A stretch of DNA of 64,000 nucleotides from Hormiphora californensis (lineage: Eukaryota > Animalia > Ctenophora), in contig CM035356.1 in the NCBI GenBank assembly GCA_020137815.1, positions 4,092,001-4,156,000 on the forward strand, read 5' to 3'. The position numbers and the translations under genes were made by a program. The notes below the pieces were generated by a model. The model saw nothing but the letters and a program-made list of their open reading frames with translations, was not told where the DNA came from and did not search any database. This document shows positions 48,101 to 59,948 of this stretch, in pieces. How positions within the stretch are numbered: position 1 is the stretch's first letter; the number at the start of each line of letters is the position of its first letter.

Positions 48101-49104
48101 AGGATGGTGAACATGCTCGGGAAGAGACGCTTCCAGACCGCCCCCTGGACTGCTTGGTTCCCAACACAGAGGTTGGTAGTGAGTTGGAGTGAAGCCCGGA
48201 TCACCTGAACGAGGGGGGAGAAGGTGTTAAATAAGGATGGGGTGTTTAGTGAAGGGGTGAGGGATGTTAGAGGAGGGGTGTTTAGTGGAGGAGTGTGTTG
48301 AGCAACTTGACACCCTATCTGACACCCTATCTATGAAACAAGGAGGTATTTAGTGCCATCACACTGTGTATCTGACGTCACTAACCTCGACACAAAGGGG
48401 AGTGTAGGTGAGAGCGTATGGGTACTTGTGCTTCACTCGGTTGCATTTCACTCCGACTTCGTGGTAAAAACAAATGCAGTCGAGGATGGTATCAAGCAGG
48501 CCCGTTTTTACCTGAGGGGGGCAGAAGTTTATCTATGACGTCACTCGTGGATTATTTTCTGAGTACAATAATAACATGGTAACCATGGTAACTAACCTGT
48601 AGGAACTGATTGCGGGCAATGTTAACAACACTATTCCGTAGAAGTCGCACCAAGTTAGCGGTGGCAATGATGGTAACGGACACGATATCCACCTCCCGCT
48701 GAGTGAGATTGCTGACATTGTCAACTTTCTCCCTAACATCCTTGTTTGCCCTCTCCAGGAGCAGCTTCAGGCTGTTGTACATAACTTCATCGAATCTCTC
48801 TCGTGACTGTAACAATAAAGATGGGTTGTTATGGTAACAGAGGGGGTTGTTATGGTAACAGGGGGGGGTTGTTATAATGGTAACAGGGGGGTTGTTATGG
48901 CAACAGTGAATATTGGATGACCGAATGAAGAAAAAAAAATCTAGGATTCTGTAAAATAATTACCTCGGCAGTGGCTTTTGTCCATTTCAGCAACTCAGTC
49001 AGGACACGAGACAGGTCATTCCATTCCACGTATGGTTTAGCTGCTTGGGGACCAACCCATACTCCCCTTCTGATCCGATCAAATTGTCTCTCAATGTCAA
49101 CCAT
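41104..49104 (-). CDS. ATXN10: Ataxin-10 homolog, ~489 aa, 9 exons (48964-49104, 48597-48806, 48386-48511, 48013-48204, 47670-47844, 47410-47559, 46949-47133, 41549-41634, 41104-41308)
   Basis: Phase-consistent splice (1470 nt). ARM-like motifs RLLRNS..NQ and LQLTTNLCVGN..Q..VW. C-terminal LGGIQTILSHCILDGNNPYIMEWSIFALRMLLDGNEENQ matches the ataxin-10 domain. Confidence 0.88.
43505..44132. repeat. Two sets of degenerate direct repeats in the large ATXN10 intron
   Basis: gccatgatacggcctcataaata...tttcatg.tgccgatatgagac occurs twice (~43563, ~43690). atgtccaattaccattgctctaccctacc...tttgaccacggataat occurs twice (~43845, ~44056). Confidence 0.75.
45152..45257 (+). mobile_element. Possible Helitron-type 3' termini upstream of the GPCR
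   Basis: GC hairpin (cccg..ttcgccc-gta-gggtgaa..cggg) followed by CTAG|T at 45185-45189. A second similar hairpin (tacccg...cgggta) follows. Confidence 0.35.
45396..46758 (+). CDS. Rhodopsin-like (class A) 7TM GPCR, 357 aa, 3 exons (45396-45553, 45661-45802, 45985-46758), nested antisense in an ATXN10 intron
   Basis: TM1 GIPSN, TM2 IAIVD, TM3 C...SISR in place of DRY, TM6 NIP, TM7 NSAANPLVYF. GT-AG junctions are in phase. Confidence 0.92.
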
Positions 49105-49584
49105 CTTATACCATCTTACATAAAGAGAATGAAAAGTATGAATTGATTAGGAATAAGGTGGCCTCAGGTTTGTGGCGTGAAGGTAGCGTAATATGCAACT
49201 TTGTTTAACTTAAATAAAAAACTCAAAAATGACCAAAGTTACGGTCAGTCGTACGATTGGTCCGTTCAGTTCACAAAGTTGATAAATCAATAAAAACTAA
49301 TAAGTTTCTACTATATGTTTAGGATAGACCAAACTAATATGGCAGAATCTTTGTTCATTTTCCTCAGTTTCCTGTGGAGAAACACTACTACAGCGTGCTG
49401 GAACGGGTAACTCAGATTGTCTATATGCAATTTTTCTGTAAAAAGGTGAACACTGATATCCTGCTTTCCCGTCATAAAACACTCATTCAAGACATTCTGT
49501 GGAGAAGTAGAGCAGTGTTTTCGGAACTAAGGCCAAAGGGTAGGTTGGGGCAGGTTTGGAATAATTTTGAGCGGGACGGGTTCG

Positions 49585-49683
49585 ACGTGTAACGTCATCA
49601 TCAGCTCAAATTAATTTGTTTTAAGTAGTGTTTCAATCTTTTCAACACTCAAATTAATTTGAGCTGATGATGACGTTACACGT
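49585..49683. repeat. Short inverted-repeat element (34-bp perfect arms), MITE-like
   Basis: acgtgtaacgtcatcatcagctcaaattaatttg ... caaattaatttgagctgatgatgacgttacacgt. Confidence 0.8.
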
Positions 49684-49857
49684 TAAAACCGTCTCAATTA
49701 TGTTTTCCTGCAATAAATCAATAAGTCGTCAAAAACAGCCGATTGGTCAATTTATTGATTCAGTTAACGCATTATTATATGAAAAATATTAGCCAAGCTA
49801 CAAACGTTCATAGTACATAGGGGTAACAAACATTGCCATGCTTCGGGCTCACGTAAG

Positions 49858-49886
49858 CTCACACCGGGCCTTCGGCCCGGTGTGAG
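49858..49886. other. Perfect 13-bp hairpin with a GAA triloop on the minus strand, like a HINE/Helitron terminus
   Basis: ctcacaccgggcc-ttc-ggcccggtgtgag, with an adjacent GGCTCAC motif. Confidence 0.5.
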
Positions 49887-50105
49887 AGCCAACAGACTGG
49901 GAACATGTCAAAAGAAACAAGACATCAAGATTTAAAAGATCAAACTGTAAAAAGTAAAAACATAAATATGTAACATACGTCATTTTACATTTGGGTAAAT
50001 TATTCCGATCTAACACGTTCCAAACATCGACAGCAAAATTGTTATTTGTTAAATACACAGAGTAGAAAGTCAGTAATGATTTTGCCGTGCTAATAGCAGA
50101 AAATT

Positions 50106-50599
50106 TTAATCAAGTTCCATTTGTAACCAGTTTATGAAGAAATACATGTTATCATGTTTCCAGTTCTTGTAGAGTTGATCAACAGACGCAGTTGTGGTAT
50201 TAAGATCGCTACATACAGTGAATTGGGTATTTTTACTACTGCAGTCAACAAAAATATGTTGTAGAAAGTCAGGGTCTTGGTGAAAGTGAGCATCTGTTTC
50301 AGCCTCTAAAATTGCACGATCCTCTACCAACTTAATGGTAATAACTGGCCATGATTTTACATTTTTAACAGCCACTGAAACCTCCACCGCAACTTGGCAT
50401 CTTTTATTGGACTCTCGTGGGTTGTTATCACAATTATAAGGGGTGTGGAGGAACCACACTTTAGAGACCTGAAATGGCAAGCTCAACGGGCCAAGTACAA
50501 ACGTAATATCACCGTATTCACACGATTCTTCGTACTTTTCCCCCATGGCCATGTAATGCCTTAAAGGGTTATCTTTTAGAAAGGTAAACGAATTGACTA
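50106..50599 (-). CDS. C-terminal half of the intronless BTB/POZ gene, cut off by the LINE insertion
   Basis: Open frame LVNSFTFLKDNPLRHYMAMGEKY...AHFHQD...WLQMELD*. It joins in frame to ...LPEKY at 54480 when the LINE and one TSD copy are removed. Confidence 0.75.
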
Positions 50600-53500
50600 A
50601 ATCAAATTCATAAATTTGCGTAACACACAGGATATTTAAAAAGATAAACCTCCTAAAAAGAGTCAATACTCGGTACACTCACAGCACAGCGACACATAAC
50701 ACACTAACACGCATCATGGACACCACTCTAGTATTGAGTTGCTGTTTGCTTGAGCAGGATAACCGCTGATGGGGGGTGTATCCGGAATGGTAGAGAGGAA
50801 ACTACCTAGCTGAGATTTGAACTGATAAAGAGTTGGGGCCTCCTTTACAGATCGAGGCAAAGTGTTCCACAACCTTGCCCCCAGTACCGCAAATGATTGT
50901 TCATATAGCGACAGGTTAGATCGTTGAGCCTCGTACGAGTATCGAGGGACGACAGCTCTAGGGCCAGAGCGGTGACTGTCGACGAAACACATGTCAGTAC
51001 TGTTGGGTATCTCATTGTTGTACACTTTCCACACAAGAATCATAGTGTACCTCTCTCGTCGGCGCTGAAGCGACAAAAGTCCCAGGGTTTGAAGACGTTG
51101 CCAGTAGTTCAGCCCCTTGAGACCAACGATCTTACGGGTGTACGATCGTTGAATATCCTCAACACGACTGATATCCCCATTTTTGGAAGGTGACCACAGT
51201 GTGCAACAGTAGTCAAGATGGGGACGCACCAGTGACTTGTAAAGAGTCATCATGGTGCGGCGAGTTCTGGATCTAAATGCACTTAACGTCCATCCAGCAA
51301 CCCGACTAGCCGTGGTAACAACTCGAGATATTTGGGCCGACCATTGACCATCACTCGAGAGTAGAACACCTAAGTCTCGGACAGTGTCTGTTGGATCGAT
51401 GAACCTCCCATCAGAGAGTTGATAGGAATAGTTCTCAGCACTGAACGGTACTTCTCTAAGCGAACTGGTGTGATTCAGGGTGAAATTCATGACCTCGAAC
51501 TTTGACTGGTGCAAGGACATATTGTTAGCGTCAGCCCAGGTTATCACACTGTTCAGATCCTCCTGTAGGTTCAATTTGTCAACCATAGTACGGATAGCAG
51601 AGAAGATTTTAGTGTCATCAGCGAACGACAAAGAAGAACCGTGTTTGATTACGGATTCCAGGTCAATTACATAAATCAGAAATAAAAGTGGACCGAGAAC
51701 AGTCCCTTGTGGGACCCCACTTCTGACTTCTGCAAAAGAAGACGCTACGCCGTCGACTAAGACCGTTTGTTTCCGGTCTAGTAGGAAGCTGCGGATCCAT
51801 TCAAGGAGTTTGCCCTTAACTCTATATCTCTGCAGCTTTTCGAGAAGTATACCGATGTCAACTTTATCAAAAGCCTTCTCGAAGTCTAAGTAGATTACAT
51901 CCACTTCAAGAAGGTTGTTGAGATTGTTCAGAATATTGTCAATGTGACGAGTGAGTTGGGATAAGCAGCTCCTCTTGCTTCTAAATCCATGCTGAGACTC
52001 GTTAAACAAGTTCTCTGATTCAAAGTATGACACCATTTGAGATCTTACAACCCGTTCAAATGTCTTGGCAATGTGGCTGGTGAGGGAGATCGGGCGGTAA
52101 TTTTCAGCTTTCATTTTAGGACCCTTTTTGTAGAGGGGTGCAATGTACTGAAGTTTCAGACAGGGTGGTACAATACCAGAATCAAACGATTTGGCCCATA
52201 AGATGGATAGGGGGTAGGACAGCGATGATCGGCAGTCACGTAAAATTCTGGCAGGTACATCTCCTGGAGGGCCGGCTGAATAGGGATTGAGGTCATGTAG
52301 TGCCTTTTCAATATCAGCGGTGGAGAAAACGATGTCTGAAAGGCTGCATGTAGAAGGAGTAATGTTGTCTGCAGCTGCTGAAGGGGAGTTTGAAGGAGTG
52401 CTGAAAACAGAGGTAAATTGTGATTGAAATAGTTCTGCCTTCATCTCGGGAACGTCCGTAAGTGACCCATCACTTTTCTGTAAAGGAGGTATACGTGACC
52501 GGGTCTTCCTCTTTCGGTTGGCGTATGACCAGAAGAATTTTGGGTTAGCTTTGAGTTTTATCAACGCCTCGTTTTCATCAGAATCAAGTCGCTGAGAAAT
52601 GTGACACAAGATGGCCCAAGTAATTCTGGAAACACCAACCTCTAGCTGTGGCAAAAGGTGAGGTTTATTCTGCCGGGCAAGAGTAATCCGTTTATTCAAA
52701 CTCCGCTGTTTCACTTTCAATTTCCTGAGAATAGGGTCCCTTCTTTTTTTACGGGCCTTCTTCTTACGAGAGTGGTGAGATAAGACCTGTAGAACAGTCA
52801 GGGTGAAAAGTTGAACGAAATCAGAACCATCACCGTCATCGCAGATGTCGGCGAGTGCTAGCCAGTCGATCTGGTCCAACTCCCTACACATTTCAGGGAA
52901 GTTAGCCTCGTGAAAGTTGTAAATATCAAAGTCCGTGAATCGATGGTCTGATTGACGAGTGGGTAAGATACCAAACCCAAGTGTAGAGCTGATCATATTA
53001 TGGTCAGAAATACACGACTCCGATACCTCAGTTTTGAAGACATAGTCTGGCCGATTGGTGAGAACGAGGTCTAGAATATTCAAGCCCCGTGTTGGAGAGT
53101 CAACAAGCTGAGTGAGAAAATATGAGTTCACAAATTTTAGTAGCATCTGTGAGCTAGGTCCTCCAGTGAGTGTCCCCCAGTCTATGTCTGGCATATTGAA
53201 GTCGCCCATGACATAGATGTCAGGACAACCCTTGTCGAGTTCGCACTGATCAATGAAACGGGATAGATCATCAAAAAGATCATTCGCAGGGGAAGATGGC
53301 GCCCTGTACACAACACAGAAAACCGAGTGGGTCTCCTTGATGTATACAGCAGCTGCACTATTGGACGTGTCTGAGAATCTGAACTCAGAGGAAGGGGTCA
53401 GTTGATTGTTAATGTAGAGTGCACAACCACCACCTCTTCTACCCGCTCTGTCACAACGAGTTAGGTGAAAGCCTTCAATCTCCAATTGGGCATCAGAGAA

Positions 53501-54472
53501 ATCATCATGCCACCAGGTCTCCGTAATACCGGTGCAAAGGATGGGTATTGACGGATTCTCCAGTGAGTCCTTGATAAAAGAAAACTTCCACCGACAGTCA
53601 CTAGCTGCGGAAGGCGTTAAACTGCGGGCGTTGATGAGGAGTAATTCCGAAACCGTTCCAGAACCCCTTGGTAGTTGGTCGGGGTGTTCAGGCCTGGTTG
53701 TGTGAGTGTCAGATGTTTGGGCCGGGGTGTGTGTTCCCTCGTCATCTCTTCCCTGAAGGACTGTAGAGATGAGTTCAGTGACGTCTTTACTTCTCGAAGA
53801 ATCTCGTCCCTCACTGAGGCCATCAATGCCATGAGAAAATCCTCTTGTGAACGGATGTCATTGGTCGCGGCACGGGGATCGGTCTCAGTTTTGTTAATCT
53901 TCTTCTTCTTCTTCTTCTTTGGGTTTGGAGGAGCTGAGCGAGGGGTCTCTTTCTGCTCCACTTTCTGAGGGACACCACTGGTTTTGTTACCAGCAGTCTT
54001 CAATGAATTACCCTTGGTAGGGGCTACTTCACTTCTCCGAGTGTTCTTTAAATGTGTGTCTTTACATTCTTTGTCGGTACAGACTCGGGAGATCTCAGAC
54101 TTATGGCAGAGAGGTGGGTGAAAATCCTGGCACTGGTCACCATAGTTACACCCAGAACGAGTTGCCGTTCCGAACTGACAATAACGGAGGCATCTCTGGG
54201 GATGTTCCTTGCTGCAAGGCTTACCACTAATCAACTTGTCACCATTTGGGCCATGAGGACAGTCTCTCAGTAGATAACGTTCACAAACATTGCTGAATTT
54301 AGGAACACCTTGGGGTTTCACCTCTCCATCAGAAGATATGTCTCCAAGATCCACATCTTTTAGAACTGTCACTCCACCAACAGGAGTTACCAGATCATCA
54401 GGATCTTTCTTGACAGGAGCTTGTTTCTTCTTCCTCTTCTTCTTACCGCTACGGCCTGCCTTTGGACTGATT
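50600..54472 (-). mobile_element. 5'-truncated CR1-group non-LTR retrotransposon (3873 bp) with a 7-bp TSD
   Basis: ORF1 remnant with three CCCH fingers, ORF2 with APE and RT domains, short 3' UTR ending aatttatgaatttgatt. TTGACTA (+ strand) occurs at 50593-50599 and 54473-54479. Confidence 0.9.
50714..53857 (-). CDS. LINE ORF2: apurinic endonuclease plus reverse transcriptase, stop-to-stop frame with no suitable ATG
   Basis: APE motifs LLINARSL, GITETW, VYRAP, MGDFN, LDLVLT and SDH. RT motifs YRPISLTS, QHGFR, LDFEKAFDKV, GVPQGTVLGPLLF, FADD and RDLGV. No stops or frameshifts. Confidence 0.95.
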   Translation of the reverse strand, partial: HPFTRGFSHGIDGLSEGRDSSRSKDVTELISTVLQGRDDEGTHTPAQTSDTHTTRPEHPDQLPRGSGTVSELLLINARSLTPSAASDCRWKFSFIKDSLENPSIPILCTGITETWWHDDFSDAQLEIEGFHLTRCDRAGRRGGGCALYINNQLTPSSEFRFSDTSNSAAAVYIKETHSVFCVVYRAPSSPANDLFDDLSRFIDQCELDKGCPDIYVMGDFNMPDIDWGTLTGGPSSQMLLKFVNSYFLTQLVDSPTRGLNILDLVLTNRPDYVFKTEVSESCISDHNMISSTLGFGILPTRQSDHRFTDFDIYNFHEANFPEMCRELDQIDWLALADICDDGDGSDFVQLFTLTVLQVLSHHSRKKKARKKRRDPILRKLKVKQRSLNKRITLARQNKPHLLPQLEVGVSRITWAILCHISQRLDSDENEALIKLKANPKFFWSYANRKRKTRSRIPPLQKSDGSLTDVPEMKAELFQSQFTSVFSTPSNSPSAAADNITPSTCSLSDIVFSTADIEKALHDLNPYSAGPPGDVPARILRDCRSSLSYPLSILWAKSFDSGIVPPCLKLQYIAPLYKKGPKMKAENYRPISLTSHIAKTFERVVRSQMVSYFESENLFNESQHGFRSKRSCLSQLTRHIDNILNNLNNLLEVDVIYLDFEKAFDKVDIGILLEKLQRYRVKGKLLEWIRSFLLDRKQTVLVDGVASSFAEVRSGVPQGTVLGPLLFLIYVIDLESVIKHGSSLSFADDTKIFSAIRTMVDKLNLQEDLNSVITWADANNMSLHQSKFEVMNFTLNHTSSLREVPFSAENYSYQLSDGRFIDPTDTVRDLGVLLSSDGQWSAQISRVVTTASRVAGWTLSAFRSRTRRTMMTLYKSLVRPHLDYCCTLWSPSKNGDISRVEDIQRSYTRKIVGLKGLNYWQRLQTLGLLSLQRRRERYTMILVWKVYNNEIPNSTDMCFVDSHRSGPRAVVPRYSYEAQRSNLSLYEQSFAVLGARLWNTLPRSVKEAPTLYQFKSQLGSFLSTIPDTPPISGYPAQANSNSILEWCP

Positions 54473-55542
54473 TTGACTAGGTATTTTTCTGGTAAAAAAT
54501 CACAAGATTTCCGCATTTCCAACGCCAGTGTTATCGCCCCAGCTAATTCCGGTGAGGTTGAGTCACCAAACACGTCACAGCAGTAGTGCAGAGAAGATAC
54601 AAACTGGACACACGAAATAATTCTCGGTTCCTTATCAAGTACTTTAACAGCATCCAAGAACGAGGTACATTGTCCAAGAGCTGGTATTTCAATTGGGTAG
54701 ACGATCTGAGTCTGTAGCTTTGAGTTACTACTGGGGCTATCTTGTCGGCTAGTAGCACAGAGAGAGACAGGAACCCTTGAAAAAATCTTATATAGACACA
54801 TCAGGTCGTCTTTAGAAAGACAGAGCTCCACAGTTTCCAGTAGTCGCTCATAAAGATCTTTGTCCGCTTGAAGACACACTGTCAGAGAGGGGAGAGTTAG
54901 GAACCTCTTTTCAACGTCAGTGAGTTTCACAGGATGGGGTTTACCCTCAAAATTCTCTATTAGCCACTCGTAGAGAACTGGCACTTCCCTACTACTAGCC
55001 AGGGATAAACACAGGTCTGTGTTCACGTACTCCTGTTGATTAGGATCACGGGAGATGAAATCTTTAACCTGTGCCAATCGAAGAGAAGAGATGTCCCCTA
55101 GTTTGGTATTCAGAGCATCTTGAAGGTCTCTGTTATTCCTCTCCTTGAGGATGTAGGCTGCTTCTTCGAATAGGAACAACGCCAGCTCCAGAGATCCTGA
55201 AGTCAGTCCGGAGCAGAGGTCGGTATAGAACTTCATACACTCTCCAACCATCCATTCGACTTTGAACACTGCACTCAGCTTGTTTACCTCTCTAAAGTTT
55301 TCTCTGGTCAGAACTGCAGTCCCAGTGTAACAGCAATCCACGAAACTTGCAACTGAGGAGTGGGAAAACTCCTCCACGTCGAGTTCTTTCATCTGTTGCT
55401 TTCCCACTAAGTCACAAATCACTAAACTGTTCATGGCCAATGGGAATGAACTTGTCCTGACAACCTCACCTCCACTGCACATCAGTTGCAGATCGTTTAG
55501 ACCATTCAACTCCAGGTAGTGTCGACCAAAGTTCATAGGCAT
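53617..55542 (-). CDS. Chimeric 641-aa ORF: host BTB/POZ N-half (55542-54473) fused in frame to the LINE ORF1 CCCH zinc-finger remnant (54472-53617)
   Basis: BTB-like segment DLQLMCSGGEVV...LAMNSLVI...SVASFVDCCYTG..LTRENFREVNKLSAVFKVEWMVGEC. Composition switches to a Lys-rich linker at the TSD, followed by three C..C..C-x3-H fingers. Confidence 0.85.
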   Translation of the reverse strand: MPMNFGRHYLELNGLNDLQLMCSGGEVVRTSSFPLAMNSLVICDLVGKQQMKELDVEEFSHSSVASFVDCCYTGTAVLTRENFREVNKLSAVFKVEWMVGECMKFYTDLCSGLTSGSLELALFLFEEAAYILKERNNRDLQDALNTKLGDISSLRLAQVKDFISRDPNQQEYVNTDLCLSLASSREVPVLYEWLIENFEGKPHPVKLTDVEKRFLTLPSLTVCLQADKDLYERLLETVELCLSKDDLMCLYKIFSRVPVSLCATSRQDSPSSNSKLQTQIVYPIEIPALGQCTSFLDAVKVLDKEPRIISCVQFVSSLHYCCDVFGDSTSPELAGAITLALEMRKSCDFLPEKYLVKISPKAGRSGKKKRKKKQAPVKKDPDDLVTPVGGVTVLKDVDLGDISSDGEVKPQGVPKFSNVCERYLLRDCPHGPNGDKLISGKPCSKEHPQRCLRYCQFGTATRSGCNYGDQCQDFHPPLCHKSEISRVCTDKECKDTHLKNTRRSEVAPTKGNSLKTAGNKTSGVPQKVEQKETPRSAPPNPKKKKKKKINKTETDPRAATNDIRSQEDFLMALMASVRDEILREVKTSLNSSLQSFREEMTREHTPRPKHLTLTQPGLNTPTNYQGVLERFRNYSSSTPAV

Positions 55543-55738
55543 CGTGCAGGTGTAAGGCCATTGGATTTCTGTAGAATAAATTTGGGGTTTATTATTTTTT
55601 ACAGCGAACTGAGATGGAATCACAGCCACTAGCCAGCATACGGCTTTCAAACGTTCAGGGACGCGACGTCCACTTTTTGAAAAAAAAACTCTTTCGCAGC
55701 CGATTTTTTTAAATTTTCATTTTTGACATCTCAAAACT

Positions 55739-55910
55739 GGCCAGCGTTAAAATCTGGGTGTTTGGTGAGTGCTGACAAACGGTTTTTTAGGGTTAGGGCT
55801 AAAGTAGGGTTAGGGCTGGGGTTTGGGTTGGGGTTAGGCCTTGACATTTCCTACCAGATAAACTTTGAATTAGCCAAAACGGTTGATGCACCCAGATCGT
55901 AACGGCGCCC
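55739..55910. mobile_element. 172-bp Mutator-like MITE with 9-bp TSD and telomere-like TTAGGG repeats
   Basis: CTCAAAACT at 55730-55738 and 55911-55919. Imperfect TIRs GG..CGTTA.ATCTGGGTG / CACCCAGAT..TAACG..CC. Internal ttagggttaggg-like run at ~55787-55838. Confidence 0.8.
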
Positions 55911-56412
55911 CTCAAAACTCGCATCGCGACGGTCGCGGTGCACCTTTAGTGCTGCGCGCTTCACGGCGACGTACTCTCCCGAATTGTGCTGCGACTCCGG
56001 TTACCCCACGGTCATCATAAACACGGAAACTTAAACGTCAGTTTAACAAATTATAATGAATTAGCAATTCTGAAGCGTGATAATAAACCAAGTTTGACAC
56101 AACTGTCTCTGTCCATTTATCGCTGTCCCTGGAGATGCCAGCTCCCGTTTCCAGAATTGAGACAAGGAGCACCGCGCGCCTTGAAACTGCTGACACATCA
56201 GGTGTATAGGACGGCGCGTTCCAGTCAGTCGATTCTGGTACTGTCACTCTCTCTCTGGCGCGGCCTCCCCGGAGTTAGTATGAACAATTGGCGGGCTCAG
56301 TGTTGTTCATATGTCAGGCCGTACTCGATACGTCAAGAGAAGTGGTAACTCCTGAAAGAAGAGGGGTGTTAATATTGTCACTTAACATGCACCGCTATTT
56401 AGCAGGCACATA

Positions 56413-59948
<3,536 letters not shown>

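Follow-up and report, generated by a model that had tools for sequence, protein, structure and literature searches.

The BTB locus and its LINE copy

The stretch analysed here (the window) comprises 64,000 nucleotides (nt) of contig CM035356.1 from the comb jelly Hormiphora californensis. Its minus strand, on which all features below are read, carries a 3.88-kb copy of a long interspersed nuclear element (LINE; 50600–54476) nested in a single-exon BTB gene, with the 7-mer TAGTCAA at either side. An earlier note on this DNA had proposed the in-frame insertion of a 5'-truncated LINE into a BTB gene, and comparison with full-length copies of the element, which have a different N-terminus in open reading frame 1 (ORF1), bears this out. 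The locus begins with the 5' part of the host BTB gene (54480–55542), which has 354 codons from the ATG at 55542 plus the first base of a Leu codon completed by the target-site duplication (TSD). Pfam, paralog alignment and AlphaFold2/Foldseek place a BTB domain, BACK-like helices and a second helical region in this part. The upstream TSD copy follows (54473–54479), and its final four bases, TCAA, belong to the native LINE sequence as well. From there runs the remnant of LINE ORF1 (53617–54476), which comprises residues 184–468 of the 468-amino acid (aa) ORF1 and the stop codon, and holds a basic stretch, three CCCH-type fingers and a C-terminal region, fused in frame to the BTB part. The ORF2 open frame (50714–53857; 1047 codons plus stop) encodes an APE endonuclease and a reverse transcriptase (RT), and is succeeded by the LINE 3' untranslated region (UTR) with a short (TGAATT/TGATT)-type tail (50600–50713), as delimited by comparing 3' ends among nine copies. 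Beyond the downstream TSD copy (50593–50599) lies the displaced 3' part of the host gene (50106–50592; ~162 codons plus stop), with the last helices and a beta-rich C-terminal domain.

The resulting chimeric frame is a 677-aa ORF (53617–55650), or 641 aa if counted from the in-frame ATG at 55542. The earlier note had described a BTB-like N-half and a CCCH-bearing, LINE-ORF1-like C-half, and both halves were recovered. The first 390 residues are the host BTB part, with a BTB/POZ domain at residues 51–141 (PF00651, 26.9 bits against a cut-off of 20.5). Leu-Val at 391–392 is encoded by the TSD copy, and from K393 on the ORF is identical, in the same register, to residues 184–468 of the ORF1 of full-length LINE copies. 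The peptide across the chimera junction contains ...LPEKYLVKISPK..., and the BTB–ORF1 5' junction sequence occurs a single time in the whole of the window's own genome, which was the genome searched throughout (45 contigs, including 13 large ones, that sum to 110.69 Mb). The published H. californensis assembly has 110 Mb in 44 scaffolds, with 13 chromosomes and ~2% single-nucleotide polymorphism (SNP) heterozygosity (PMC8527503).

As a 7-mer, TAGTCAA is not rare in itself: chance alone predicts 11.5 matches in the window, which has four. The pair is informative because both copies, which had been noticed at the compositional switch and after the LINE tail, stand exactly at the two ends of the homology to the LINE family. 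When 50600–54479 is removed, direct reading gives ...tac cta gtc aat tcg ttt..., in frame with the 50106–50678 ORF. This 190-aa ORF downstream of the LINE tail, an "orphan" in the present arrangement, is joined to the host frame just as had been foreseen.

Filled and empty alleles

Contigs from four public runs of the same species (library kind not stated) were compared with window positions 50000–55900. Run X2, from another sample and another study, yielded a 342-nt contig whose first 232 nt equal 50368–50599 with zero mismatches. Past 50599, the next 15 letters equal plus-strand 54480–54494 with one SNP, and 95 letters continue onward. This contig has one TAGTCAA and no LINE and is the exact empty site, the empty allele that the earlier note had predicted, in another individual. 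The filled state is seen in run X3, which comes from the same sample as the best-matching run, probably the assembled animal: one contig (50327–50628, zero mismatches) crosses the filled 3' junction at 50599/50600 and reaches 29 nt into the LINE. Since an exact empty site is present in another individual of the same species, the insertion is not fixed. The insertion is real, recent and polymorphic.

The LINE family and the truncated 5' end

A genome search with the LINE gave 47 matching places, many of which begin at differing internal points and share a common 3' end. At least nine are near-full copies, and six of these are 99.3–99.6% identical to the window copy. Full-length copies, ~4.5 kb long, have their own 183-codon ORF1 N-terminus and no BTB, which was the outcome that the proposed insertion required of a genome-wide check. 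All copies that reach the breakpoint share one upstream sequence where the window has BTB sequence, and comparison of their upstream flanks sets the 5' end of the family 633 nt upstream of the window breakpoint at 54476. The ORF1 ATG lies 86 nt into the full-length element (ORF1 at L002:954–2357). With its 5' end 633 nt short, the window copy therefore lacks the head with which full-length copies open (see below), the ATG and the first 183 ORF1 codons; the lost part of ORF1 includes a conserved Cys-rich stretch.

The LINE sequence at the breakpoint is ...GAGT|TCAAAATC and that of the target ...CTAG|TCAA|TTCG, with a 4-bp microhomology, TCAA. Microhomology is typical at the 5' junctions of truncated LINEs, as established for L1, and we infer that TCAA mediated 5' joining here. 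A longest-common-substring test for TSDs at six other full-length copies returned nothing convincing.

ORF2 had been called intact, and this stands as far as the open frame is concerned: 1047 codons from 53857 to 50714 contain no internal stop. RVT_1 is matched at 105.5 bits (Pfam cut-off 29.6), and Exo_endo_phos_2, N-terminal to the RT, at 44.5 bits (Pfam). The N-terminal third of the endonuclease domain that is missing from the listed ORF (LLLINARSL...ITETWW) sits upstream of it in the same open frame. The claim does not extend to independent initiation. ORF2 is read in the -1 frame with respect to ORF1, shares 241 nt with it (53617–53857) and has no ATG before the endonuclease; having no ATG of its own and overlapping ORF1, it is probably dependent on ORF1 translation. 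With an RT, an APE endonuclease, 5'-truncated dispersed copies and a TSD with a matching empty site, the element is a LINE, that is, a retrotransposon without long terminal repeats (non-LTR). A protein search with ORF2 returned marine-metagenome proteins without names and Mnemiopsis leidyi "hypothetical proteins".

Full-length copies open with a 41-nt spliced-leader-like head, TTTCAAAC...TTTGAG (L002:868–908; also in L003–L009). The joint between head and body falls at four different points among the copies, and candidate copies of the head number at least 600 genome-wide, many with a match to the head alone. In the longest copy, the bases just before two of the four head joining points are not AG. 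Full-length copies thus have ~86 nt ahead of the ATG, 41 of which are head, and the family probably has no promoter of its own and relies on host transcription. The earlier note had held that truncation cost the element both its start codon and its promoter. The ATG is indeed lost, whereas the premise of a promoter is doubtful; since the family is probably without one, promoter loss by truncation would not be the key loss. The real losses of the window copy are the acceptor region together with the ATG and the N-terminus of ORF1.

ORF1 combines a conserved N-terminal Cys-rich domain with three conserved CCCH-type fingers, and no Pfam family was matched. The finger motifs are C-x7-C-x14-C-x3-H, C-x13-C-x5-C-x3-H and C-x8-C-x4-C-x3-H, and all 12 finger ligands are invariant in seven homologues at ~50% identity. 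On the ORF1 remnant, Pfam zf-C3H1 falls below threshold (13.2 bits against 20.9, E 0.076). The nearest Atlas clusters, in which 10–24% of members have zf-CCCH, give a score of 0.87 and serve as a lead only. A literature search for CCCH-type ORF1 proteins in non-LTR elements turned up papers on ZAP, on further host factors or on LTR elements, and none on a LINE ORF1. The three-finger, conserved CCCH ORF1 of this LINE may outweigh the chimera itself in value.

The host BTB gene family

More than 100 places in the genome match the N-half of the host gene, and of these more than 30 are open single-ORF paralogs of ~530–580 aa; several decayed copies are also present, and many paralogs stand in tandem arrays. 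Searches, alignments and comparisons all treated the two host pieces separately, and a joined model was never used as a query. The 3' piece (50109–50597) matches the same paralog ORFs immediately downstream of the N-half match, with identities to intact paralogs of 82% for the N-half and 73% for the 3' piece. In the closest paralogs (534 and 540 aa), the match to the 3' piece begins 5–6 residues after the N-half match in the same ORF, and in the closest one the two matches are 18 nt apart inside one 534-aa ORF counted from its ATG. In a protein alignment of 19 rows, the two pieces from the window meet inside a variable linker. Intact paralogs thus span both pieces contiguously, which confirms 50106–50592 as the displaced 3' end of the gene.

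Pairwise ratios of nonsynonymous to synonymous substitution (dN/dS) against six paralogs are 0.16–0.47 overall, 0.11–0.35 in the N-half and 0.25–0.75 in the C-part, indicating a real coding family whose C-terminal domain is evolving faster. PF00651 scores are 26.9–28.2 bits for the window copy and 24.3–27.5 bits for the paralogs, all above the cut-off given above. The only sequence relatives of the family found were "sb/..." EukProt entries, from a related comb jelly, and one European Nucleotide Archive (ENA) contig, at no more than 75% identity.

The start of the window copy differs from that of its relatives. DNA alignment with three intact paralogs reveals that 2 nt are deleted seven codons into the ORF, near 55550/55551. 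By this deletion the ATG that matches the family's usual start (55559–55561) is out of frame, as a frame check confirmed, and a 31-codon overlapping upstream ORF is created. This leaves 55542 as the sole possible start of the BTB frame. In run X5, from a third sample, one contig has two extra bases at 55550 that would restore the paralog-like frame of the canonical ATG; it may represent an allele or a paralog.

Paralog loci include L014:1525–3126 and L015:946–2565, together with arrays at C7:4967659–4981157, C11:903113–924318 and C6:959383–973722 of the genome (G000). Another LINE fragment lies beside one of them: L015:2754–4007 (minus strand) holds a 417-aa RT fragment, the 3' part of a different LINE, ~190 nt upstream of the BTB paralog and in the same orientation. 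This proximity may be coincidental.

Predicted structure of the host protein and the chimera

The AlphaFold2 model of the closest intact paralog has a mean predicted local distance difference test (pLDDT) score of 81. It is made up of a BTB domain (~20–120), helices to ~262, a disordered linker, a second helical region (282–384) and a beta-rich domain (391–532). Foldseek matched the N-terminal 200–300 residues to the BTB-BACK parts of KLHL3, KBTBD2, KLHL11, SPOP and KEAP1 (E ~3e-4 to 5e-3). For helices 125–262 of the model, BTB-BACK matches were to KLHL3, KBTBD2 and KLHL11 (E 3e-4 to 1e-3), with low TM-scores.

Modelled by itself, the C-terminal domain has a pLDDT of 75. In a comparison with 48,161 chains, its nine top-ranking matches are without exception of the MATH/TRAF type (Siah1, USP7, TRAF6, TRAF3, TRAF1, meprin and SPOP MATH), with Z of 5.0–6.3 over 102–116 aligned residues, a range in which, according to the tool's own note (Z <8), a match may reflect a common arrangement only. 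The models weakly suggest that the beta-rich domain is MATH/TRAF-like, and it is probably the substrate-binding part of the protein. This large BTB family, whose C-terminal domain is MATH-like and which is known to date only from comb jellies of this group, may outweigh the chimera in interest.

In paralog numbering, the insertion point is near residue 360, in the last helices and ~30 residues upstream of the beta-rich domain. With the insertion at this point, the chimera keeps the BTB-BACK scaffold and loses the C-terminal beta-rich domain. In place of that domain it gains the basic stretch, the three CCCH-type fingers and the conserved ORF1 C-terminus.

Origin and likely fate of the chimeric frame

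These observations are very probably explained by a recent, still-segregating insertion of an active LINE family into the exon of one BTB paralog, with loss of function likely and the chimera incidental. The LINE would have inserted by target-primed reverse transcription into the coding exon of a single gene from a large BTB family that is specific to the lineage. First-strand synthesis begun at the target would have led to the 7-bp duplication TAGTCAA, and reverse transcription or second-strand joining would have halted 633 nt before the 5' end of the element, at the TCAA microhomology. Given the sense orientation, the ORF1 frame would have come into register with the host by chance, in one case out of three. 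As the sequence stands, the BTB-BACK part reads into ORF1 184–468, with the host C-terminal beta-rich domain stranded 3.9 kb downstream. Loss of function of one redundant paralog is the most likely consequence, and the chimeric frame, as an incidental by-product of the insertion, probably lacks a function of its own. Weighing against this explanation are the open ORF2, the in-frame host ATG at 55542 and the retained BTB-BACK part, with which a stable fusion protein is physically possible.

The earlier note had suggested a functional outcome, either a new fusion protein or a nascent BTB–ORF1 retroelement, and this part of it finds no support in a young, polymorphic insertion with a unique junction and an out-of-frame canonical ATG. 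As a working new gene, the chimera would be a BTB-BACK protein of the Cullin-3-adaptor type with its substrate-binding domain swapped for the C-terminal region and CCCH RNA-binding part of ORF1. Such a protein might bind the RNA or the ORF1 protein of this LINE and restrict the element, like TRIM5-CypA or gag-derived factors. The frame is open for 641 codons from the ATG, the model shows the BTB-BACK part complete, the ORF1 remnant still has its three CCCH fingers and conserved C-terminus, and the insertion lies ~30 residues ahead of the beta-rich domain and outside it, all as a working gene would have it. However, an insertion that is polymorphic and very young offers no selection to read, landing in frame is a 1-in-3 event, and in the window copy the canonical start codon of the family no longer lies in frame. 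Nor is the fusion fixed, as a domesticated gene would be, since an independent sample carries the empty allele. We regard a working gene as very unlikely. Still less likely is a host gene that re-arms a dead element, with BTB gene transcription and the host ATG driving ORF1 (184–468) and then ORF2 to give rise to a nascent BTB-headed retroelement. An open ORF2 that has no ATG of its own, and so probably depends on ORF1 translation, is compatible with this scheme, as is the near absence of a 5' UTR beyond the head in full-length copies, so that host transcription is probably used anyway. In contrast, the junction occurs at no other locus in the genome, leaving no sign of daughter copies, no LINE copy in the genome search has BTB sequence at its 5' end, and the lost ORF1 N-terminus has a conserved Cys-rich domain that may be needed. 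There is only a slim chance that the segregating allele provides an expressed BTB-BACK/ORF1 (CCCH) fusion, a newborn restriction factor that would link the RNA or ORF1 particles of this LINE to a Cullin-3 ligase, or host-driven, ORF1-dependent ORF2 translation from a copy that is otherwise dead.

The locus might also involve no insertion, and be either a three-ORF element family (BTB-ORF1, endonuclease-RT and 3' ORF) or a mis-assembly. The arrangement itself, and nothing further, favours this view. The LINE is absent from BTB paralogs, BTB is absent from full-length LINEs, and both junction states are present in contigs. A three-ORF element was rejected because full-length LINE copies, with an ORF1 N-terminus of their own, contain no BTB, and because BTB paralogs are without the LINE; a mis-assembly was rejected since an independent sample has the precise empty site and short-read contigs show the filled 3' junction. 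Neither a three-ORF family nor a 3' piece lacking paralog support, two of the outcomes that the earlier note had named as counting against its proposal, was found, and we give the view without an insertion hardly any credence.

As a recent insertion into one BTB paralog, the locus is a clean, documented case of LINE activity going on in a comb jelly, with filled and empty alleles both in public data. It indicates that this LINE family is active now. The exact breakpoints, the microhomology at the truncated end and the coding gene that was hit make it a useful population marker. The in-frame chimera is the type of raw material from which host–transposon fusion genes arise; at its present stage it is best viewed as a new break in a single gene among more than 30 paralogs.

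Comparison with known systems

The insertion resembles exonic 5'-truncated insertions of the human L1 type in its sense orientation, TSD, variable truncation, shared 3' end, 4-bp microhomology and broken ORF. It differs from them in that the comb-jelly LINE has a microsatellite-like tail rather than poly(A), an ORF1 with CCCH fingers and a spliced-leader-like head, and in that the truncation happens to leave the ORF1 frame in register with the host. The 41-nt head is carried by full-length copies and, by reason of the 5' truncation, is missing from the window copy.

The fusion is also comparable to those of the TRIM5-CypA type, in which retrotransposition likewise sets a binding module behind an oligomerising, ubiquitin-ligase-linked N-terminal scaffold. 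TRIMCyp, however, is fixed or common, expressed and functional, whereas here the allele is polymorphic and the fusion protein is a predicted one. The added module is, moreover, the element's own ORF1 remnant, followed by the whole of ORF2.

Among BTB-BACK and MATH-BTB Cullin-3 adaptors (KLHL, KBTBD and SPOP), the N-terminal 200–300 residues of the host protein superpose on BTB-BACK (Foldseek E ~3e-4), and the nine best structural matches of its C-terminal domain, as given above, are all beta-sandwiches of the MATH/TRAF type (Z 5.0–6.3). The domain order of SPOP is reversed in the host family, with BTB first and the MATH-like domain last. Further points in common are the large size and tandem arrays of the family and its faster-evolving C-terminal part. 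The likeness to MATH is weak, and a Cullin-3 adaptor role of the host family is at most putative.

Sequence surrounding the locus

An Rfam scan of 49000–58000 gave no matches. Just upstream of the BTB ORF, window positions 55738–55886 hold a short interspersed repeat of ~150 bp with degenerate CCCTAA telomere-like units. The repeat has at least 788 genomic candidates at 91–99% identity, and contig depth over it is thousands of times the flanking depth in all four runs.

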